From assembly GCA_039096225.1 (NCBI GenBank), contig JBBPEB010000015.1, positions 1,984,001 through 2,048,000 of the forward strand: a stretch of 64,000 nt of DNA. Direction: 5' to 3'. Position 1 is the first letter of the stretch; every line of letters begins with the position of its first letter. The position numbers and the translations under genes were made by a program. This DNA is from Blastocystis sp. Blastoise (taxonomy: Eukaryota; Protista; Bigyra: Opalinata). The notes under the pieces are model-generated. The model worked only from the letters and a program-made list of their open reading frames with translations. It was not told the DNA's origin and did no database searches. Of the stretch, positions 4,905 through 20,173 are shown piece by piece.

Positions 4905-5969
4905 TTAGAAAATAGTACAACAGGTCTTGACTTCTTTGGGTTCTTCAACTTGAGGTTCTTCAGTCTTAACTTCTTCTACTTTAGGTTCTTCAGTCTTAGG
5001 TTCTTCAATCTTAGGTTCTTCTACTTTTACTTCTTCTACTTTAACTTCTTCAACCTTAACTTCTTCAACCTTAGGTTCTTCTACTTTAGGTTCTTCAATC
5101 TTAACTTCTTCTACTTTAGGTTCTTCTACTTTAGGTTCTTCTTCTACTTTAACTTCTTCTACTTTAGGTTCTTCTTCTACTTTAGGTTCTTCTACTTTAG
5201 GTTCTTCTTCTACTTTAACTTCTTCTACTTTAGGTTCTTCTTCTACTTTAGGTTCTTCTACTTTAGGTTCTTCTACTACTTTAACTTCTTCTACTTTAAC
5301 TTCTTCTACTTTAGGTTCTTCTACTTTAGGTTCTTCTACTTTAGGTTCTTCTTCAACTTTAACTTCTTCAACTTTAGGTTCTTCTACTTTAGGTTCTTCT
5401 TCAACTTTAACTTCTTCAACTTTAGGTTCTTCTACTTTAGGTTCTTCTACTTTAACTTCTTCTTCTACTTTAGGTTCTTCTACTTTAGGTTCTTCTACTT
5501 TAACTTCTTCTTCTACTTTAGGTTCTTCTACTTTAGGTTCTTCTACTTTAGGTTCTTCTACTTTAGGTTCTTCTACTTTAGGTTCTTCTACTTTAACTTC
5601 TTCTTCTACTTTAACTTCTTCTTCTACTTTAGGTTCTTCTTCCTTTACTTCTTCTTCTACTTTAACTTCTTCTTCTACTTTAACTTCTTCTTCTACTTTA
5701 ACTTCTTCTTTAGGAGCTTCGGTCTCAGCAGGGCTTTCAGAAGGAGTATCTTCAGTAGGAGTAATACAAGTATTGTCTAATTCACCAGAAGCTTTCATTA
5801 ATTTAAGCATAGGAGTAAGGCGTTTTTCACTAAGTTCCCAATCATTATTCTTTTCTTTAAGAATAGCTCTAAGTTTTTTAGCAGCCATTTTAGAAACAGC
5901 ACCAGATTGTTCAGCATTAACAGCAAAGATAGCTTGTTTGACTTCTTCATCGGTAGGTTTATAAGGCAT
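4905..5969 (-). CDS. Intronless 354-aa protein: small N-terminal helical domain, long VEEPK/VEEVK repeat region, C-terminal CC-aaX (KTCCTIF)
   Basis: Clean ORF with ATG and stop; 15/18-nt coding repeats at about 4940-5710; C-terminal prenylation/palmitoylation-type motif. Confidence 0.85.
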   Translation of the reverse strand: MPYKPTDEEVKQAIFAVNAEQSGAVSKMAAKKLRAILKEKNNDWELSEKRLTPMLKLMKASGELDNTCITPTEDTPSESPAETEAPKEEVKVEEEVKVEEEVKVEEEVKEEEPKVEEEVKVEEEVKVEEPKVEEPKVEEPKVEEPKVEEPKVEEEVKVEEPKVEEPKVEEEVKVEEPKVEEPKVEEVKVEEEPKVEEPKVEEVKVEEEPKVEEPKVEEPKVEEVKVEEVKVVEEPKVEEPKVEEEPKVEEVKVEEEPKVEEPKVEEEPKVEEVKVEEEPKVEEPKVEEVKIEEPKVEEPKVEEVKVEEVKVEEVKVEEPKIEEPKTEEPKVEEVKTEEPQVEEPKEVKTCCTIF

Positions 5970-6170
5970 ATTGACTAATTAAGCAAAAATAAGTAATTAA
6001 AAAAAGGATTATAGATATAATCGCAAAATAAATAACATGATCATCAAGACATTTAGATTACATGACATCTAGCATAATAATCGATAACCGCGAATATATC
6101 TCAAATTAACTGCGGAAAAAGGATTAATTCAATATTATGAAACTTTCAAAACAAATTGTGAAAGTGCTTT

Positions 6171-6186
6171 ATGATTGGCTATTTAT
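6171..6186 (-). promoter_or_regulatory. CCAAT (NF-Y-type) box upstream of the EEPKV gene
   Basis: TGATTGGCT (AGCCAATCA on the - strand) about 200 bp upstream of ATG 5969. Confidence 0.4.
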
Positions 6187-6233
6187 TTGACATGGTTGGA
6201 CCTCCTCATGTTGTTAAAAAATTTGTTTGATGT

Positions 6234-6246
6234 CACTATCAGCGAT
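6234..6246 (+). repeat. Left terminal inverted repeat CACTATCAGCGAT (preceded by TSD TGT)
   Basis: Exact reverse complement of 19839-19851. Confidence 0.93.
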
Positions 6247-7709
6247 ATTTTAATTATTAAATGTATCTGATTGGTTGATTTTGGTTCAAAACTTGTTCCA
6301 CCAATGGAATGAGATTTACTTCAGCGACTTAGGCAAAAATCGTGAATTTTGACAAAATTTTGACACTTTTTTTCAGTTTAGTTTTTCTTAGGTATAAAAA
6401 ACCATATTAGACATATTTTATTAAAAAATTGACATTATTTTCTCGTCTTAGAATGTCACATAATATCAAAAACGTTTTTAGTTTGTTTTAAGTCGAAATT
6501 TGGTTAATTCATCGGGTCCATATTATAAAGTTTTTTATAGTTGTGTTTGGAGTAAAAGATTTTTAAGAGTCATATATACGAATAAAAATTAATAAAATGG
6601 CCGCTATGGCTCAAAACCAAATTTCAGCCAAAAATTCAAATTTTGTTATTTTTTTTTCAGTGAAAAAAAATAACCGAGCCTATTTGTTTGATGGACAGTC
6701 AGACCAGAGTCTTAAATTTTTGAAATACTTACGGGAATGTTTTTCCCATTCAAAACTTGGTCTATTTCTATTTTTGAATTAAAACATGTCTAAATATAAT
6801 TGAAAATTGTTTTAAGACTCATTTCATATCAGATATGAGTATATGAGCCACAAGACACCCTTAATGATGCGTCAATAGAATATTTTGCATCAGATTCAAA
6901 TATTTGTTTGTGTGTTGATTTCACAATTGTATCATAGCATAATCACCCTAAATTATATGCTATAAACATTATAGTTGCCCAAATTATTTCATATCGATTT
7001 TGAGTAAATCAATATAATTTGTTAGTTTTTATTTAAAAGTAAGAAGACACAACTAATTTTTATTCTATATGACGAACAGCTTGTAACATTTGAATTAGGT
7101 CAATGAATGATTAAAAAACGAAGAAAAATTTTTTTGTAAAAAACAGCGAGTTTTCTTCGTTTTTTTTAAACGAAGAATTTTTATTATAATTATTGTTAAC
7201 AAAATGTCATAATTTATTTTAAATTGATAAATGTGTTTGATTATTATAGATATAATTGCTACACGTATTACTTTATAATCTTATAGATTTTTTTATATGT
7301 TGTTGTTAATCTGTTGTCTTTTTAGTTTTTCCTTTCGATGTTTACAGTTGTTAATGAAGTTATGCCTTTCAATAATGGTTTTGGATATTTATTAGAGTAT
7401 TTAAGAAGTTATGCTGCCACAATTCTTTTGTGAATTAACTACATCGGTTAAGTTTTATGATTGTTACTATTGTCTACGGCTTGTCTAATCATATTAAACA
7501 AGAACAGAATATGTTTTTGTGCAAAAATTAAATTCATGTTTTGTTCTGATTTAGAATTACATACTTTTCTGTATTTATTCATTTATTTAACTTTACTAAA
7601 AATCATTGTATAGTAATTATTATATATATATATTATATAATAGATGTCTATCATTATTATACTTATTATTATACTTATTATTATTGTCATCATTATCTTC
7701 TTTATCTAG

Positions 7710-7997
7710 TTATTACTCCTGCTATCCTCCTACTACAGTCACTTGTTTACATTGTTTATTAATGATGACTTCTATGAGACGTTATCTCTTTGTTAAACCT
7801 GAATCTCGTTTAGAATTCTTAAAATTATTAATTGAAGAGGTTTTTGAACAATTAACTCGTAGTCATGCATTTGATGATAAAGATACTTATCATATGTTCT
7901 GTCAATTATTATGAAAACTTAAAGTATATAGATATATTTATTATTATTATTATTAATGTATTATATGAATTCTATATACGAATATATTATACTATAA

Positions 7998-8042
<45 letters not shown>

Positions 8043-9388
8043 CTATTTCTTTAGGCTAATTTCCAGTTATCAGAACTTTTCAGAACTCCACGATATAGTG
8101 AATTTATTCGTCTTTTAACAAATTTTACTATTGATTCCTTTAAGAATTGGCAATGGTGTAGTAATTCTTTTAGTTATTTACTTACTTTATGGAGTTGACT
8201 GATTTGTGCTGAACGTTATGTTCAGATCGGTTCAGATATTGATAATACAAGTTGTTTTAATGAATCTGTTCATCAATTAATACAAGCATATATTAATGGT
8301 AAAATGGAAAGTGTAGATGATTATGTTGATGATGATATGAATAACCCTCTTAGTGATACAGAAAGCTTAGCCATAGAAATGCAACAATTACCTCAAATAG
8401 TCAGATATTTTTTTAAGTGAATACTACATATATATGTAACTGCTTTGATCCTCTTAATGAAGAATATAATGTATATAGTATTATTATAATAATCTCTTTT
8501 TTTGTTTATATTTGCATTTAAATATACGTTTATATTTATATTCATTATTATATTTATTACTTCTATTCTCGTGTATTTCTAGACCCTTCTTTATCAATTT
8601 TCTAAAGTATGAGTAAATACTACAGATTATCAAGAATTGGCGAATAAAACAATTATTGAGCAATATATATATTCTTAAACAATTATTTATAGGCTGTCTT
8701 TCGTGGTTTTGTAATACTGTTGTTACTGTTTTTATTAATCAAGTATTCAGCAAACACAGGTTCAAAATAACTATCATTAATAGGTACAGAAGTTATTCAA
8801 CTTAAACATAATGCTAGTTATTGACTTAACGTAAATATATATAAACTATATTATAATATGTTATTATATATTATTATATATATTATTATATATTATTACA
8901 TTTGTTTTTGCTTTCGTTTTTACAGTATATATATATATGTATAAATATATATATATAGAATTGATTTAGTAGGATTAATTCCAACATGGAATTATCATTA
9001 AATTTTCTTTGAACAATTCAGAAATATAGATATATATATGAGAATAAGAAGCGTCTTCCTGATGATACCTTTCTTGATATGAATTCCTCTCGAAAAGAGC
9101 AATTATATATATTTATTGGCTATGTATTAATAGATAGAAATTAAATATATATATAAATAATTTATCAATATTGCATTGATGATTTATCTTATTTTTTGTC
9201 TAGATGTAAGAAGAGTAATATATTAAATCACTTAATCGATGTAATTTTGAATAACCTTCGTTATTGGGAAGATAATACAGTGATTATTAAAAATTGCTTA
9301 GATATATTCCTTAATCTCTGTAATGATCATGCCTGCTCTCAATTACTATTAGATATATCAACTACTCAATATCCACTTGAAACATATA

Positions 9389-9424
<36 letters not shown>

Positions 9425-9480
9425 TTATTATTACAAGCGTTACACAGAAATATTTATTTACATTCTATAGATTCTGCTTT
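7710..9480 (+). pseudogene. XPO7: Exportin-7 (RanBP16/17 family) internal fragment, pseudogenised, inside the transposon
   Basis: Spliced translation CLLMMTSMRRYLF...YHMFCQLL*KLK|ANFQLSEL...FTIDSFKNWQWCSNSFSYLLTLWS*L...NPLSD...ILNNLRYW matches XPO7 motifs ([43 protein letters not shown]). In-frame TGA at 7912 and 8196, frameshift near 8410; no N- or C-terminus. Confidence 0.88.
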
Positions 9481-9696
9481 TCATAATTTTATTTCTCACT
9501 TCTAGATTTTATGATATTATAATAAGAATAAAAAGAATCATGTAAAGAAAATAATAAGAATATAAGTATGAGTGCCTTATAGGTACTAATTATAATAATA
9601 ATATATTATCTTATAATAATGATAAGAATTATATTAATGTTATAACTAAGAAGAATAATATGAATGATGAAATTAACTTTTTTGGCGATAATAATA

Positions 9697-12335
9697 GTAT
9701 TATTACTTCCTTATAATACTATTACTTATACTATTATTATTACTACTACTTCCTTATAATATTATTACTTACCTATAAAATTATTACTACTACTTCCTTA
9801 TAATATTATTACTTCCTTATAATATTATTACTTACCTATAATATTATTACTTACCTATAATATTATTACTATTTACCTATAATATTATTACTTACCTATA
9901 ATATTATTACTATTTACCTATAATAATATTACTTACCTATAATATTATTACTTACCTGTAATATTATTACTTACCTGTAATATTATTACTTACCTATAAT
10001 AATATTAATACTACTTCCTTATAATATTATTACTTTCCTATAATACTATTATTACTTACCTATAATAATATTACTTACCTATAATATTATTACAACTTCT
10101 TTATAATAATATTGTAATTGCTTCCTTATTACTACTACTTCCTTATAATATTATTACTTTCCTATAATAATATTACTACTTACTTATAATAATATTATTA
10201 CTACTTACTTATGATAATACTAATTCCTTATAATATTATTACTTCCTTATATTATTACTACTTACTTATGATAATATTAATTCCTCATAATATTATTACT
10301 TCCTCATATTATTATTACTTCTTTATAATATTATTACTTCCTTATAATGTTACTACTTACTTATAATATTATTACTTTCCTATAATAATATTACTTACTT
10401 ATAATAATATAACTTATAATGTTAGTACTTATAGTATTATTACTTCCTTATAATATTATTACTTACTTATAATACTATTACTTCCTTATAATATTATTAC
10501 TTACTTATAATATTATTACTTACTTATAATAATATAACTTATAATGTTAGTACTTATAATACTATTACTTCCTCATAATACTATTACTTCCTCATAATAT
10601 TATTACTTACTTATAATAATATAACTTATAATGTTAGTACTTATAATACTATTACTTCCTTATAATACTATTACTTCCTCATAATACTATTACTTCTTTA
10701 TAATATTATTACTACTTACTTATAATATTATTACTTACTTATAATATTATTACTTCCTTATAATATTATTACTTCTTTATAATATTATAACTTATAATGT
10801 TAGTACTTATAATATTATTACTACTTACTTATAATATTATTACTTCCTTATAATATTATTACTTCCTTATAATACTATTACTTCCTTATAATACTATTAC
10901 TTCTTTATAATACTATTACTTCCTCATAATATTATTATTTCCTTATAATATTATTACTTCTTTATAATATTATTACTACTTACTTATAATATTATTACTT
11001 CATTATAATATTATTACTTCCTCATAATACTATTACTTCCTTATAATACTATTACTTCCTCATAATACTATTACTTCCTCATAATACTATTACTTTCTTA
11101 TAATACTATTACTTTCTTATAATACTATTACTTCCTCATAATACTATTACTTCCTCATAATACTATTACTTCCTTATAATATTATAACTTATAATGTCAG
11201 TACTTATAATATTATTACTACTTACTTATAATATTATTACTTCCTCATAATACTATTATTTCCTTATAATACTATTACTTCCTTATAATATTATTACTTC
11301 TTTATAATATTAATACTTCTTTATAATGTTACTACTTCTTTATAATGTTACTACTTCTTTATAATGTTACTACTTCTTTATAATGTTACTACTTACTTAT
11401 AATATTATTACTTACCTATAATAATATAACTTATAATGTTAGTACTTATGATAATATTATTACTTCCTCATAATATTATTACTTCCTTATAATACTATTA
11501 CTTCCTTATAATACTATTACTTCTTTATAATAAGATTACTTCTTTATAATAATATTACTTCTTTATGATATTATTACTTCATTATAATACTATTACTTCC
11601 TTATAATACTATGACTTCTTTACAATACTATTACTTCCTCATAATATTATTACTTCCTTATAATAATATTATTACTACTTACTTATATTATTATTACTTC
11701 CTTATAATACTATTACTTCCTTATAATATTATTACATCTATATAATACTATTACTTCATTATAATATTATTACTTACTTATAATAATATTATTACTACTT
11801 ACTTATAATAATATTAATTCCTTATAATATTATTACTTCCTTATAATATTATTACTTCATTATAATATGACTTCCTTATAATACTATGACTTCATTATAA
11901 TAATATAACTTATAATGTTACCATTTACTTATAATAATATTATTACTACTTACTTATAATATTACTTCATTACAATATTATTACTTCATTTTAATAATAT
12001 AACTTATAATGTTACTACTTACTTATAATAATAATATTACTACTTCATTATAATATTACTTACTTATAATTTAACTACTTACTTATAATATTATTACTTC
12101 CTTATAATGTAACTACTTCCTTATAATAATATTACTTCTGTACAATACTATTACTTCTTTACAATACTTTTATTTCTTTATGATACTATTACTTCTTTAT
12201 AATACTATTACTTCTTTATAATACTATTACTTCTTTATAATACTATTACTTCTTTATGATACTATTACTTCTTTATGATAATATTACTTCTTTATGATAC
12301 TATTATTACTACATCCTTAAATATTATTACTTCCA
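9697..12335. repeat. ~2.6-kb minisatellite, base unit ~19 bp (TTATAATATTATTACTTCC and variants)
   Basis: Directly visible tandem array of roughly 130 degenerate units; no ORF of 60 aa or more in any frame. Confidence 0.95.
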
Positions 12336-14635
12336 TATATTACTGCTGTATATTACAGTTATTAATAACAAAAACAAAAGTCATATCAAGTGTATTAACA
12401 ATAAGAATAATAATAAAGCATGAAGAAGAATGAATGCTATATTAAGAATCAGTAATTTGGATGCAAATACTAAGATACTAAGATTATAAATAATAGTACA
12501 TATACTAATACTAATAAAGAATCAATAATATTAATAGTCTTCTCTATATAACAATCAGAAGATCATGAAGTATAATAGTATTACTAGTATAAGCCTTTTT
12601 ATTCTAACAACTGATTATATTTTCATCGTAATACAAATATTTCTTCAAAATAATCTTCCTCTTGTTAGAACATACCCATACTGTTATGTCTCCTTGTATT
12701 TTTATATAATAAGCTGATGATGACACTACTACTATTACTAAACTCCTACAATTTTCTTCTTGTTTTCGTTATAATACGCATGCTCATAATAATTATAAGA
12801 ATTCTTAAATATAATAGAAATATTTTGTGCTACTACTACCGTTATTATTATGTCTAGTTGTAATGATATTAAAGATATTTTATATGTGTCATGTCTTTTT
12901 ACATTCTTATTCCAATAATACTATATCTAATACTAATGATATTCTGCTACTTAAACTATTATACACCAAATCCTTTTTCTGTCTATTGCTTCTAATATTG
13001 TTAATACTTATATATTTGGAATATACTACTATGCAATACCTTTTATATTTTTCCTCTTTCTTCTCCTAATACTACGTATAATAGTAGTTATTAATAAGAA
13101 CAATGATAAGATTATAATTATGTTTTCTATTCTTGTTTTCTAATTTCTCTTACATTTTGAATCAATTAAAATATTATGCTATGTCATTAAATGATTGTAC
13201 CTCCTTTACTAACAGTTTTTAAATTAATTTAAATACCAAAAATGTTATGATATCAATATGTAATTCGGTTTTCGTAATCATATCTTTAAAGAAAGAATAC
13301 CATAAGTAATAATACTTGAAGTACTATTACTTTCTTTATAACCTCTACTGATCTTAGATCATAAATAGTTCTATCACAACTATCAATGAATGTCTATTAT
13401 TACTACTAATAATACTATAGATTAATGAGATTATAATATAGTATTGCTATGCAGATTCTCCTTTTAATTATTTTTTTCTTCTATCTCTTTTCTTACTCTC
13501 ATCATATGACTGTTCATACAAAAATCATATATTACTCATTATGGTTTGCCATTAATATTTCATTTATTAGTAACAAAAGATCTACTAATATGGTTATTGA
13601 AAATGGTTTAGTAAAATATATAGAAAACATATATTACTGTAATAATTACTTTATGAATTAATAACAATAAAATAGGATTATATATTAAACATTTAAAAAA
13701 ATATATGAGAATTTAGAAGATTAAATTAAATAAGTCTATGCTCATTCTATTTTGAATAGAACATGTAATAGTTTTTAAATAAGATGCTTTATTATTATGG
13801 ATAGAAAAATACAATGAAATAAGGATATATTCAGTAAATATGAATGAATTTAGTACAAATCAATATAATATATATATTATTCGATATAATATTAGATACT
13901 TGAAAAGTTCGATGATTATTGCTTCATATATATAGATTATTGGTGAAAAAAGTTGTAAATAGATATGAATTTGAACATTTTTTTATGTATTATTTAAAAC
14001 ATTTATTCACTGTAATTTTAACTATTATGAAGTTGAATTAAGTTAGAAAAACCTACTATGATCTGCTTTTATGTTATGAAATTCATTAATAACAAGAACA
14101 ACCAAAAAGTGATTATAAGAGATAATATGTATGAAATTATACATTAAAAATATAAATTATAAAAAAGTCAAAGTTTAAATACGATTATACATATAATTTT
14201 ATAAGTATTTACATGGAAATGTACCCATTCACATGCATGTAGTCTTTTGGTATAAATGTTGTATAAGTATAAACATCTTCTGAAGTTACTGTCAACGTAG
14301 ACCTTTGGATAGTCTTTTCTTTGGTTTGTTTTTCCTATATAAAGAAGAATAAAGTATAGAAACAATAAAAGATATTATTTGACAAAATTTTTTATAGTTA
14401 ATAATATATAAATAATTAGTATTAAGAATATATATATGCATATAAAGATGAAGGTAATCATTCTGATAATTAAATATATATAAAAGTAAAATGAATTCAT
14501 TATAATAATTATTATATTAGTAATTAAAAGATTTATCTACACAATGAAATATAAAAAATGATACTAAATAACTATTACTAATATACATACGATGTATTTA
14601 TTATGATACTAATATGAATATATTATTATTTATTA

Positions 14636-17600
14636 TTAATTAATATAAGTATATACTTCACAAAGAATGTCATCAGGGGTTTTATTTGTATGTATATCCA
14701 TTACTAAAACGTTTGAAGCAAGAAATATGTTAATATTTTGGAATCCTTGAAACCCTTGACTGTCCATAAAGTGATAATATAATCCTGTTGCAGATGATAA
14801 TGCTGGACCATAATCGTAATTCATTACAAATATGGAATCATTCACCTTTATATATTTTAAGGCCTTTACAAGATGTGGCTGATGATTATTTTCTTTTTCA
14901 TAATATATCAAGTATGAATTATCTATTCTATGTACACCATCATCAACTTGGCTGGTTGTATATATAAGTTTGTTATTAACAAGGATTCTATCATAGAAAC
15001 TAACAGATAGTTTATTATAATTATCCTTCAACTGATGAAAATTATTTTCTATAAATAAGTTTAAATTATAATTTCTATTTTCTCCTGTCCAACCAATAAT
15101 ACCATCTATTAGATAATTAATAAGTGTTTGAGATCCTTCTTCAAGAATTATTTTGAGAAACTGGAAAAGTACTTTATCTGGCATCTCTATCGGTTCAGAA
15201 TAATGAGAACAACTAGCAGAATATATATATGTTTTATTGTTTCCAACAGGATTATAGTAAATAGTATTCTTATCATGTTGCATATCTTCACATGGTTGAG
15301 ATATATTACTTATTTCGTTTCTGTTATTGGATCTTCCTTGATGATCATTAGATACTAAAATTGTTTCTTTGGTTATTGATGACATGCAGCAGGAAATATT
15401 AAATTCATTGCGAGAATGAGATGAGTGCTTAATTTTAGAATAATATGATTCTGATTTCCAAGTTGATGTTACTGATAAGCTTCCTGTATTTCTTAAACAT
15501 GAGACCAAGTGCTGGATAGAATGTATTTGAGATGTAATTAATTGCTTTGGCAGTATAAGCTCACAGAGAAATGTGAATGTAAAACATTTCTTTTCAAGCA
15601 TTTCCAAGTCTTCGATATCATTCGCTTTATATATATGGCAATCATGAATAATAGAAGCTAATAATTCGAAAAGAGGTATTATAGGACTGTCTTTTGAATT
15701 AAAATCATATAATATTAATGGTAATATTTTAGAAACGAAAAATATTTTCGTGTGTGTATTTATTTTGTTGAACATTGTTTCATCTAGTATATAACGAAAC
15801 TGGTATTCACAATCCCCATATATACTATTAACTGCTGAGATACGTGTTTCCAAAATGCTTTTATTTGTTGGGTTTAGTTCAAATGGTTTCCTCTGGTTTT
15901 CTTTAGTATTATCATTTTCTTTTTCATTTGAGGATGTCTTTTTATTCGATTGATCTTCCTTCATATTACTTACATTACTATCTTCCTTCATATTACTATC
16001 TTCCTTCATATTACTTTCATTACTATCTTCCTTCATATTACATTTATTACTATCTTTCTTCTTCTTACCTTTATTACTATTTTTCCTCTTCTTACCTTTA
16101 TTACTTTCTTTCTTCTTCTTACTTTTATTACTTTCTTCCTTCTTCTTACTTTTATTTTTATTTTCCTTCTTGAATCCAAATAATAAACTTAATAAAGTAT
16201 TACAAACATTTCCAAAAAGATGCATAGTATCTAATGGAAATGATGTTGAAGGATTAAAGTAGCTAAGTTGTTCAGAAGTACTTCTTACCTTTTTTATTCC
16301 TTTATTGTAGGATGGATTATCATTATTACTACTTCTTATTTCAGTAATTACTTCTTTAGAATATGGATTGTATCTAATATTAGTAAATGAATCTTCATAT
16401 AACTTACAACTCTTCGAAAAGGATTTGTACATGATATATGGTTTACTATTTATATAAGTATTCGTTTTATTAATCCATTTAAGAAGAAACTGATAACATG
16501 GAATATATATATGGACTCCAGTATTCGACTTTTGAACTGATATAGATACATGAGAATAGGAACACTTCATACCTTCATGTAATAGTTCAGCATGCTTATC
16601 GCTTTGCATATCGCAAAATCTACAAGGATATGTAGATGATGGACCTAAAAATTTACCTACATGAGATAATGCTGCAGAATCTCCAAATGTATTAATTAAT
16701 ATGCCAACTACTTTCCTATTCTGTAATCTCCCATCAAGATAAATATCCATGTTTATTCCAGCTTGGAGTAACTTGAATTCAGCCATCAGTATATCAAGGC
16801 ATAAGTCAATAGAAGGCTCATCTACGCAAGTATACATATAGAACTCTCTTTTATCGTACTTTCTAAATTTCTTATAATTTAATAATTGGATCAAAATTGG
16901 GTTTGAAGAACTATTCTGCTTAGTAACAGCCTTATCAAACATCGATATACCGTCTGTAGTAACGTTGAATGATAAAATGATATCACCATTATTGGCACAA
17001 TCTCTAAGATATGATTTATAATTCATTCCTAGCATGTAATTTGGTATATTTTGAATCATTGAATCTAGGTTACTATTATTAAGACTACTATATATTTGTT
17101 CTATCTCATCTTTTCGATAAAATTCAATATCTTGTATATAATATGGAGATGAAAGTATGGCTTGAAGTCGGGGAATTAGTGGAATAATAACTTGTTTGTT
17201 ACCTATATAAGAATTATATAATGTTTTGTGATATATATATATATATATATAACTACTTCTAGAAATATATACATATATTTCCGTTGCATATAGGATTACT
17301 ACATGTTATATCTTTAAATAATGGATATGCTTGTATTGTATTATATGTATGTATTACATGACACTTATTACATGAAAATATATTTATATGAAGAGGCTTA
17401 TATATAGAATTTCTAACATATTTTCTTACAATATTTTGTGAGCATTTGGGTATTGTTAATATAGGAAGATCAATGTCAAATTCGCTTATTAAATTATTTA
17501 TTAATTCATACAAATTTGCTACTTTTTGAAAGCTAATACCTAGTTTTCTCCAACACTCAAAAATTAGGTCATTCATGGCATCCTCTTTTGTACTCACTTT

Positions 17601-17887
17601 CTCATGAATTATCTAGATAAAATGATTAGTAGGTATTGTGTTGAAGAAATATAATAATGGCTTATATTAAAAGAGAGGTATATATTATATATATATTAAT
17701 ATAAACCGTATACTTTTTGTGATAAGATGAGTTGCATGATCTGCCTTATAATATCACCATTTTCTATCTCAATTGGTGTATTCTCATTATTTAAAGAAAT
17801 ATTCACATTGTTGATTTCATCTGCAATCAAGGTAGTTGATCTATGATAAGTGTCATGTCTCTCAGATAATAATGTTGCTATGATCAT
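14636..17887 (-). CDS. CACTA/En-Spm transposase (TnpD/Tnp2-like), ~1026 aa, 3 exons
   Basis: Exons 17887-17714, 17612-17273 and 17202-14636 splice in frame via GT-AG. Motifs: CNKC...CSNPIC zinc finger, PLIPRLQ, VTTDG (D), FGDSAAL (D), YPCRFC, PLDTMH, HSIQHL and KSESY (E). Confidence 0.9.
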
Positions 17888-18085
17888 TAATGTTATTTCT
17901 TATTTTTATATCTTACTATTTATTCCTGATTTCTTCTTATTAGATATCTTATGTCTATAATTATTCATTATAACAAATACTATGAAAAATGTTTATTAAA
18001 AAAAATAAAATTCATTTCTTCTGTAGAATTTTACTGATTATTATCACGGTTTTCATATATATTTTTTTCTTTTACTTTCTTTTTC

Positions 18086-18872
18086 ATGGAATCATCTACT
18101 TTATCTTCATTAGAAAGAAATAAAATTGATAGTCTTCAAGAAGATATCTATAAAGCTATCGAACATTATTTTAACGAATTAAAAGGTGAAGAGACAAATG
18201 GTATTTCAATTTAATTCTTTGGTAATAATTATTTAGAAAAGACTATTCGTTGCTCAGATGTTTTTATAGAATGTGAGGCTATGATAAGAAGACTTTCCAT
18301 TAAAAGAGATATTCCATTTAGAAACAAGAAGTTGAATTCAAATAAATTAAAAGTATTTATTGTATACATATATAATGTTTAATTCAATAGACTATAATAA
18401 AGGTAATTCCTTTTTGCTTACCTGAAGCTATACGAAAAAATGCAAAATCCATGTTTACATTAAAAAAGAATAATATATGTTTAGATCATGAGTCAGAGGT
18501 CTACATATATATTTGTCGTCTTGCTCGTCTTTATTTGCATACATATGAGAAACAAGATAATTATAGTGATGAAATTATAATGGTTTGTGTTCGTGAATGT
18601 ATTACTAATCGTCGTCGAAAAGGCTCGTTTCCTCAATTCTTTGGGTTTCATTTAGATAGAGAAATAGAAATACATGACTCAGGATCCTCTGAGATTGTAT
18701 GCTTTTATACGTTTCTTTTATCATTCTTTTATATAATATTCTTTATTTTTAGTTTGGCAAATGGATTCCAATTAGTCCTTTTCCAAATACAAGTTCTTAT
18801 ACATATATACATTATGAAACAATAATAAACAATTTGCAGAAATGCCAAGAGATTCTACCATTCTCAGGATAA
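18086..18872 (+). CDS. Second transposon gene (218 aa, 4 exons), divergent from the transposase; unknown function
   Basis: Exons 18086-18200, 18237-18352, 18391-18696 and 18753-18872 join in frame with GT-AG introns of 36, 38 and 56 nt; ATG to TAA with no internal stops. Confidence 0.7.
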
Positions 18873-19838
18873 ATCTTTGAATTATTCTATTTTTCTTTAT
18901 TCCTTTATTCTATTTCATAATGATTGGCTATTTATCTTCTACACTATAATTCTTTTGATTTATATTAAAATGATTGGCTAAGTATTTTTAATAGAATATA
19001 TTTTTATGCTGACTTTATTTTTTGTTTTACACCATACATTCATATTTTATTTTATTGCTTTGTTTATCTCACAACAAAAATATCAATGAACATATTCAAT
19101 AACTATACTCTTTGAAAATGTATTTTACTTTTAAACAGTATTAAAGTATTATTGTGTCTAGGTGTCTATCAATTTTCGAATCAATTATCTTGTTAATGTA
19201 TATAATGTTGTAAAATATCATAACATCTTTTTATATAGAATGTCAGGTGTTTGATTATTCAAGGGTAGCAAGTATTTTGTTTCGTATTTCTATAATTCTT
19301 TGTTACTATTATTTAATTAACTATCAATATCCCTTTCTTTAGTTGCTTCATATAAATTGTAACGTGCATTGAAATGACAGCTATCTTTAACGATGTGAAT
19401 TAGGTATGTATAACTATTTATTGATTTGAATAATTCTAACTTATTTTTTTTATATAGAGTATTTATAGACAGAAGTAATTACCACCAGTAGATAGATTTA
19501 AAAAAATGTTTTAATGTTATTTCACAATTAGAATTTATTTACAATTTACTCGTTTTGTTTTCTAATTTTTGTTATAATGGTTAAAGCCATAGTTGCGTAT
19601 AGAGTAGTTTATGAAAATAACAAAGATAAATTTAAATCATTAAATAGTTTTTAAATTAATTATTCAAAGAGCGACCAAAAATAATCATCGTGTATATACT
19701 AAAAATCTTCATTGGGTTTTTTTATGCTTTTTGTTGTTTATTCTGTGGAGGGTATTTTTTTCCTTGTTTAATTGTTCTGAAAAAATCTTAAATCCAAAAA
19801 GCAAAACGTGACAAAGAAGGCCATTTTTATTCATGGAA

Positions 19839-19851
19839 ATCGCTGATAGTG
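19839..19851 (-). repeat. Right terminal inverted repeat (followed by TSD TGT)
   Basis: ATCGCTGATAGTG, reverse complement of 6234-6246. Confidence 0.93.
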
Positions 19852-20173
19852 TGTTGTTTTCTTCTTTTTTAAGGAGTCATCCTGATAAAAGAGATTCAAT
19901 GTTATTTCTTAATGATAGAACTCGTAGGTCTCATCTTATCATAATATTGAAATAAAAATTTGCATTTCGTTTTCTATTAGTTTTTGAAATGACATATAAA
20001 TATATACTAAATATTTATTATTCAACGGGATAGTACTTTGATTATTTGTTTCAACATAAGAACAACAAAGATGGAAAATAGATGGCTCTGAAAGGCATAT
20101 TAAAATAGAAAAAATAATAATTATACTAAAATACGCGAAATGCGAGGAAAAAAGGAAAAATATAAAAAAGGTC

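Follow-up and report, generated by a model that had tools for sequence, protein, structure and literature searches.

The question raised by this locus is whether a 13.6-kb segment of the Blastocystis sp. Blastoise genome, bounded by short inverted repeats that begin with CACTA, is a transposon that can still move itself, and to which group of transposons it belongs. The segment occupies positions 6234-19851 of a 64,000-nucleotide stretch of DNA (the window, C4:1984001-2048000), and coordinates given without a contig name refer to this window. The evidence described below makes it very likely that the segment is one copy of a transposon of the CMC group, EnSpm/CACTA type, that is probably autonomous and was active very recently. 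It belongs to a known kind of element with the usual plant-like CACTA layout (PMC8978399). As far as the literature searched shows, it represents the first CACTA family characterised in Blastocystis.

The genome of isolate Rus-B, from a Russian tortoise, has been reported as 33.3 Mb in 33 scaffolds, with a GC content of 23.1% (Lind et al., Genome Res 2025, PMC12129017). Transposable elements account for 5.6-7.5% of the genomes of the tortoise isolates, and for these elements only totals are given (PMC12129017). The assembly searched in the present analysis, that of a tortoise-gut isolate, comprises 33.3 Mb in 34 contigs.

Ends of the element and target-site duplications

The boundaries are defined by the following features.

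6231-6233, unstranded: left copy of the target-site duplication (TSD), TGT, read from the flank and matching the right copy
6234-6246, plus strand: left 13-bp terminal inverted repeat, CACTATCAGCGAT
6234-6774, plus strand: left subterminal module of 541 bp, 74-80% identical at at least 30 other loci
19839-19851, minus strand: right 13-bp terminal inverted repeat
19852-19854, unstranded: right copy of the TSD, TGT

An earlier note on this DNA, made from the sequence alone, had reported perfect 13-bp CACTA repeats flanked by TGT, and both ends were located as described. Across the window, CACTATCAGCGAT was found at two positions only, once on each strand (6234-6246, plus; 19839-19851, minus), and TGT directly borders both on the outer side. 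The inverted repeat is exactly 13 bp long; past base 13 the two ends differ (ATATTT vs TTTCC). In a control, two or more matches to CACTATCAGCGAT at up to two mismatches were present in 17 of 100 shuffles. One such pair in a single window is thus not rare by chance, and consequently the repeat was tested against the whole genome.

With no mismatches allowed, the 13-mer occurs 21 times genome-wide, and 11 inverted pairs are formed. Eight pairs are spaced 13,613-13,621 bp apart, one spans 29.8 kb, and two span 7.1 and 6.9 kb. The genome search for end pairs with different 3-bp TSDs, which the earlier note had proposed as a check, came out in its favour: all 11 pairs carry a matching 3-bp TSD, and the flanking DNA is unrelated among them. 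In the orientation of the element, the TSDs are AAC, AAC, AAT, TGT, AAT, AAT, GAT, CAA, ATG, TTA and AAA. AAY as the commonest TSD and a G two bases ahead of the TSD at 5 of the 11 sites point to a mild target preference of the form (G)A-AAY-T. Termini of the form CAC..GTG together with a 3-bp TSD count as grounds for the EnSpm label, while the CMCT lineages as a group make TSDs of 2-5 bp (PMC12730594). At the locus studied, the termini read 5'-CAC(TA)...(TA)GTG-3'.

The left 541-bp module, found at loci of otherwise different CACTA elements in the genome, is probably a cis-acting end region; binding sites, a promoter or a small RNA are candidates for what is conserved in it.

In two copies, C3:1151383-1164999 and C4:337890-351502, the end on the transposase side starts with A rather than C (AACTATC...). 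Their TSDs, read in the same orientation, are both AAC, in unrelated flanks. Either a copy with a mutated end transposed anyway, or the two copies are linked in another way. The shared AAC is less odd given the mild preference for AAY targets.

Copies in the genome

Nine full-length copies were found on six contigs, with 99.9-100% DNA identity in all parts tested, as pieced together from partial loci and DNA searches. About five substitutions separate the nine copies in roughly 68 kb of pairwise comparison. The 807-aa open reading frame (ORF) at 14636-17059 on the minus strand recurs nine times, stop-free and with 100% amino-acid identity. The uninterrupted copies measure 13,613-13,621 bp, a length spread of no more than 8 bp despite a 2.6-kb minisatellite in each. 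The near-identity of the copies and this narrow spread indicate that the burst was very recent. The earlier note had taken the perfect ends as a sign of a recent insertion, for which the nine copies now provide stronger support.

The 29.8-kb pair (C13:747090-776936) is an ordinary copy split by a 16.2-kb insertion. The point of insertion corresponds to window positions 18937-18944, and the nested DNA is accompanied by an 8-bp duplication and has a terminus starting with CAGGGGT, which together amount to a hAT signature.

The two shorter pairs (C4:1815729-1822806 and C25:298834-305686) are relatives with identical 13-bp ends, in which no transposase match was found. Compared with each other, the two have ends of 99.8-100% identity, and their TSDs are TTA and AAA in element orientation. 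Shared with the element are 79% of the left module and, at the right end, about 75 bp. They appear to form a non-autonomous family that probably depends for its movement on this transposase, or on a related one, acting in trans. The genome has at least 40 more transposase loci, at 30-50% identity, the nearest paralogue being 46-51% identical.

Transposase gene and its relatives

The transposase gene was modelled as three exons on the minus strand.

17714-17887, minus strand: exon 1, 58 codons from the ATG, placed by frame and GT..AG fit only
17273-17612, minus strand: exon 2, N-terminal Cys-rich (zinc-finger-like) region, placed by homology to the N-termini of paralogues
14636-17202, minus strand: exon 3, stop codon included, with the DDE core and the C(2)C, DxMH and H(3)H motifs

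Searches were made exon by exon, and codon counts were summed. The exons add up to 3078 nt, or 1026 codons, and each is stop-free on its own, which bears out the stop-free spliced product of 1026 aa that had been predicted. Intron 1 has 101 nt (GTATAC..AG) and intron 2 has 70 nt (GTATAT..AG), with splice sites read from the sequence. The large exon is open over 889 codons and aligns with paralogues from a conserved 'IIPLIPR' onward; it also codes for an insert of low complexity rich in lysine and asparagine (K/N-rich) and for a C-terminal beta domain. The annotated N-termini of paralogues match the second exon at approximately 17271-17606. This exon gives a weak RYYR-CCHC match of 19 bits, below the cut-off, and the Transpos_assoc (TAD) domain was not detected.

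The K/N-rich insert dominated a word-based protein search, which recovered a single paralogue. A profile was built from the window protein and six paralogues (36-51% identity) and searched against 1.84 billion representative proteins. Of the 25 top hits, 23 were looked up, and all came from this Blastocystis; the high-scoring database homologues are only 'hypothetical proteins' of Blastocystis sp. Blastoise. Among the next 78 hits, all beyond the Blastocystis clade, PF02992 (Transposase_21) is present in 51, DUF4218 in 23, DUF1258 in 22 and Plavaka in two, with no unrelated family. Hits carrying PF02992 reach E 7e-14, and a single-sequence BLASTP search likewise matches PF02992 proteins. The outside relatives are metagenome proteins, for example from Tara Oceans; around two of them, on metagenome contigs, CACTA ends were not found. 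The transposase of the nine copies is itself missing from the hits of both protein searches, which contain only paralogues of up to about 51% identity, perhaps because annotation of the public set masked or overlooked its gene.

In an alignment of 38 sequences that includes canonical PF02992 proteins, D76, C186, C189, D317, H320, H553, H557 and E577 are invariant, and D167 is conserved in at least 90% (residue numbering follows the translation of 14639-17179, minus strand). These residues form the motifs C186-x2-C189, D317-x-M-H320 and H553-x3-H557 and a DDE triad of D76, D167 and E577; the triad, CxxC and DxMH motifs listed in the earlier note are among them. C(2)C and H(3-4)H motifs are hallmarks of the CMC group (PMC12730594).

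Predicted fold of the transposase

An AlphaFold2 model computed from the 38-sequence alignment reached a mean predicted local distance difference test (pLDDT) score of 79 and a predicted template modelling score of 0.81. Residues 1-618 of the model match the RAG1 core with Z 11-13 over about 375 aa, BbRAGL (amphioxus RAG1-like) with Z 10.4 and HzTransib with Z 9.9, as expected of a DDE triad carried on an RNase H-like core. No CMC transposase is among the solved-structure matches, and RAG1 and Transib are thus the nearest solved relatives by default. Compared with predicted structures in the ESM Atlas, the whole model matches clusters with template modelling (TM) scores of 0.60-0.65 by query. 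These clusters are fungal Transposase_21, plant Transposase_21+DUF4218+DUF4216 and fungal Plavaka proteins.

The C-terminal part of the model (window 14639-15260, residues ~650-840) is a beta-rich domain with pLDDT mostly of 80-93. Over 101-119 residues it resembles BAH domains, namely DNMT1 BAH1 (Z 10.1-10.5), ORC1 (9.4), TNRC18 (9.0) and MET1 (9.5); at the sequence level no BAH match was obtained for this domain. The full-length fold matches run through it, in the region where plant CACTA transposases have DUF4216 and those of fungal Plavaka elements DUF6830. The literature search yielded no paper connecting BAH domains and CACTA transposases. That the model depicts a true chromatin-reader fold of the BAH type is doubtful. 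If it did, the transposases of the CMC group at large would use histone marks as cues for choosing or avoiding insertion sites, in parallel to the chromodomains of some integrases.

Accessory gene

Next to the transposase gene, and divergent from it, lies a second gene.

18086-18870, plus strand: accessory gene, defined by open segments and a conserved core exon

Four open segments on the plus strand (18086-18211, 18215-18379, 18391-18822 and 18753-18869), starting 200 bp from the transposase ATG, suggest one spliced gene. Its core exon, 18391-18702, is identical across the nine copies and is conserved at about 40 further loci with 20-52% amino-acid identity. At about 30 of these loci, a paralogous transposase is found no more than a few kb away, and in every pair checked the core exon is upstream of the transposase on the opposite strand. 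Because this synteny is kept across very divergent elements, the accessory gene is regarded as real and under selection. EnSpm/CACTA elements encode a second protein besides the transposase, and the accessory gene would supply it here; by analogy, its product would have the role that such a protein has in CACTA elements of plants. The paralogue loci retrieved contained no paralogue of the accessory exon. A single-sequence AlphaFold2 model of the accessory protein was unusable (pLDDT 38).

Cargo

The remaining internal DNA consists of three further features.

7606-9431, plus strand: captured intron-containing fragment of an exportin-7-like gene, a pseudogene, ~80% nucleotide identity to host locus C4:1305008-1306793
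9694-12339, plus strand: minisatellite of 2.6 kb, 19-bp unit ATAATATTATTACTTCCTT, ~138 copies, G-poor on the plus strand
12340-14635, unstranded: AT-rich, family-specific spacer downstream of the transposase stop, ~100% identical, in the nine copies only

The identity of the gene fragment was not obtained by a PDB sequence search, by the ESM Atlas or by a genome scan with IBN_N; it was resolved by PF25795 (TPR_XPO7), which scores 34 and 51 bits on host exons and 32.5 bits on the exon at 9157-9372 of the element, against a cut-off of 27. The fragment is collinear with a single host locus, and the host gene continues as open exons on either side of the captured part. Exons are 87-95% identical to the host and introns 60-86%. 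An intron-bearing host fragment thus lies between the ends of the element with its parental locus traceable, as expected for gene capture. The copy in the element has a nonsense codon at 8196-8198 (TGA, vs CGA in the host), and one exon is rearranged, being frameshifted and partly replaced by AT-rich repeats. On account of these two defects, the fragment is considered a pseudogene.

Over 244 codons (window 7777-9390 vs the host gene at C4:1303909-1307266), the proportions of synonymous (pS) and nonsynonymous (pN) differences are 0.169 and 0.050 in a crude test made with no correction for transitions or AT bias. The differences are mostly synonymous, and the pN/pS ratio is below the expectation for neutral decay since capture from the resident gene. 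This hints, with little weight, that the fragment may have been taken from an already diverged functional copy, perhaps of another Blastocystis lineage, before the recent burst.

The minisatellite and the spacer are specific to the nine-copy family. An ORF scan revealed no coding signal in the spacer. ARAGORN and Rfam found no tRNA-like structure in 6000-20100, relaxed ARAGORN settings gave noise only, and none was evident by eye just past the minisatellite. In plants, CACTA elements are well known to harbour gene fragments and tandem arrays (PMC8978399; PMC8903248).

In the flank at 4905-6233, a minus-strand gene has its ATG at 5969, and the element is inserted 264 bp upstream of that codon, presumably in the promoter region of the gene. 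This neighbouring gene is largely composed of 15-bp repeats, with a tandem array from 5000 to approximately 5709.

Evaluation of alternative explanations

Several results weigh against the assignment to an autonomous EnSpm/CACTA element. The 807-aa ORF retrieved no Pfam family, even at E up to 10, and the check with PF02992 and DUF4218 hidden Markov models suggested in the earlier note failed to give a direct match to the transposase. In a six-frame genome scan, a paralogue family of greater distance was the only one on which PF02992 rose above threshold. DUF4218 stayed below the cut-off, with 20-26 bits at 35 paralogous loci, in that part of the protein where it would be expected; for DUF4216 nothing was found. 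A gathering-score match to PF02992/PF13960 is an operational detector of CMC and not its definition. Since PF02992 and DUF4218 give no direct match, CMC membership rests on the profile, motif and fold evidence. On this evidence the element is filed under CMC, EnSpm/CACTA type; for the choice of EnSpm over Mirage and Chapaev, the termini and the length of the TSD serve as the basis. Exon 1 is the least certain part of the gene model and has no homology support, while the accessory exon has no Pfam match and no database homologue. No clear plant-type array of short subterminal repeats was seen either; the AT-rich DNA holds short repeats at chance level only.

The most serious rival explanation, though an unlikely one, is that the element is real but no longer autonomous, with a defective or silent transposase or accessory gene, and that its copies were spread in trans by paralogous CACTA transposases. 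The at least 40 further transposase loci would offer a source of such activity, and the 541-bp left module is common to many elements. Against this stand the transposase ORF, identical and stop-free in nine of nine copies, and the accessory exon, likewise identical in all of them. Moreover, the exact 13-bp end is found almost only on this family and its two close non-autonomous relatives, and cross-mobilisation at a distance such as that of the nearest paralogue (just 46-51% identity) is uncommon. It is very improbable that the element belongs outside CMC/EnSpm, to a short-TSD superfamily such as Transib, which has CAC termini and a RAG1-like fold, or PIF/Harbinger, with its 3-bp TSD. The idea draws on the RAG1, BbRAGL and Transib matches among solved structures and on the failure of Pfam Transposase_21 to match directly. 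Yet the best full-length matches among predicted structures are Transposase_21/DUF4218/DUF4216 and Plavaka proteins, and the profile search yields the tnp2 clan only. Transib elements produce a TSD of 5 bp, vs 3 bp here, and the likeness to Transib and RAG1 holds at the level of the fold only, with no Transib-type sequence homology. For Harbinger, no gene of the DDE_Tnp_4 type and no Myb-like gene was found.

Near-identical repeats of 13.6 kb can also stem from segmental duplication or from mis-assembly of collapsed repeats rather than from transposition. This explanation is effectively refuted: the copies are all similar precisely up to their CACTA ends and no further, they lie in unrelated flanks with private 3-bp duplications on six contigs, and one of them has a private nested insertion of 16.2 kb. 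A complete and probably autonomous CACTA element, as the earlier note had proposed, thus remains the favoured reading of the sequence, with its 3-bp TSD, intact transposase and conserved second gene; the host-gene fragment, the minisatellite and the divergent accessory gene named there are all present.

Proposed mechanism

In an autonomous CACTA element of this kind, the transposase, probably by means of the Cys-rich part near its N-terminus, would bind to the ends and to the conserved subterminal DNA. It would then excise the element and reinsert it at a 3-bp staggered cut, with the mild target preference described above, and the second protein would assist in the way TnpA of maize En/Spm does. 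Two parts would travel as passive cargo, the minisatellite and the exportin-7 pseudogene fragment. Because all nine copies carry the cargo unchanged, it appears to have been acquired before the recent burst.

Comparison with known systems

The closest parallels are maize En/Spm and plant CACTA elements such as Jozin of Chenopodium (PMC8978399), which share the 13-bp CACTA inverted repeat and the 3-bp TSD. Plant elements are also alike in having two genes (a tnp2-type DDE transposase and a second protein), subterminal regions of several hundred bp, captured gene fragments and internal tandem arrays, and plant Transposase_21+DUF4218+DUF4216 proteins have a similar full-length predicted fold (TM 0.64/0.67). 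In contrast to plant CACTA elements, the Blastocystis sequence is too divergent for a direct Pfam match, shows no evident array of short subterminal repeats, and has the Cys-rich exon with its weak RYYR-CCHC match in place of a TAD domain, for which no match was obtained; its host is a gut-dwelling protist of the stramenopiles whose GC content is 23%. The two genes of the Blastocystis element are divergent, whereas the two proteins of En/Spm are alternative splice products of one transcript. The earlier note had seen in this layout an undescribed family in the lineage. The novelty of the family stands, with no paper found that joins Blastocystis with CACTA elements, but the layout is not unusual when set beside plant CACTA elements (PMC8978399).

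Fungal EnSpm/Plavaka elements (Kojima 2025, PMC12730594) share the CAC..GTG termini, the 3-bp TSDs, the C(2)C and H(3-4)H motifs and a large size with extra genes. The Plavaka/DUF6830 cluster is a fold match at TM 0.60, and the Plavaka domain appears in the two profile hits noted above. Unlike these elements, that of Blastocystis lacks TET/JBP cargo and carries the dead exportin-7 fragment and the minisatellite. RAG1, ProtoRAG and Transib are similar in the predicted catalytic core of about 375 residues (Z 10-13) and in the zinc-binding C(2)C/H(3)H motifs. They differ from the Blastocystis element in TSD length and in the N-terminal region; the Blastocystis element has no RAG2-like partner, has an added BAH-like C-terminal domain, and its profile finds the tnp2 clan only. 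As in plant Pack-MULE and Pack-CACTA elements (PMC8903248), part of a host gene, in its genomic form with introns, lies between the ends and is multiplied along with the element. Unlike in Pack elements, the carrier here is the apparently autonomous element itself, and the fragment is clearly decayed.

Significance

No eukaryote is commoner in the human gut than Blastocystis, whose mobile DNA has barely been described. As a kind of element, the transposon described here is ordinary, and the main leads it offers are the accessory protein and the BAH-like C-terminal domain. It shows that CACTA elements of a stramenopile, too, take up pieces of host genes at the DNA level, introns included, a behaviour known above all from plants. 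A native transposase with its pair of ends is, in addition, a candidate tool for insertional mutagenesis or transgenesis. Owing to its nine identical intact copies and the matched non-autonomous partners, the family is very probably still active, and it could consequently explain structural variation between Blastocystis isolates.

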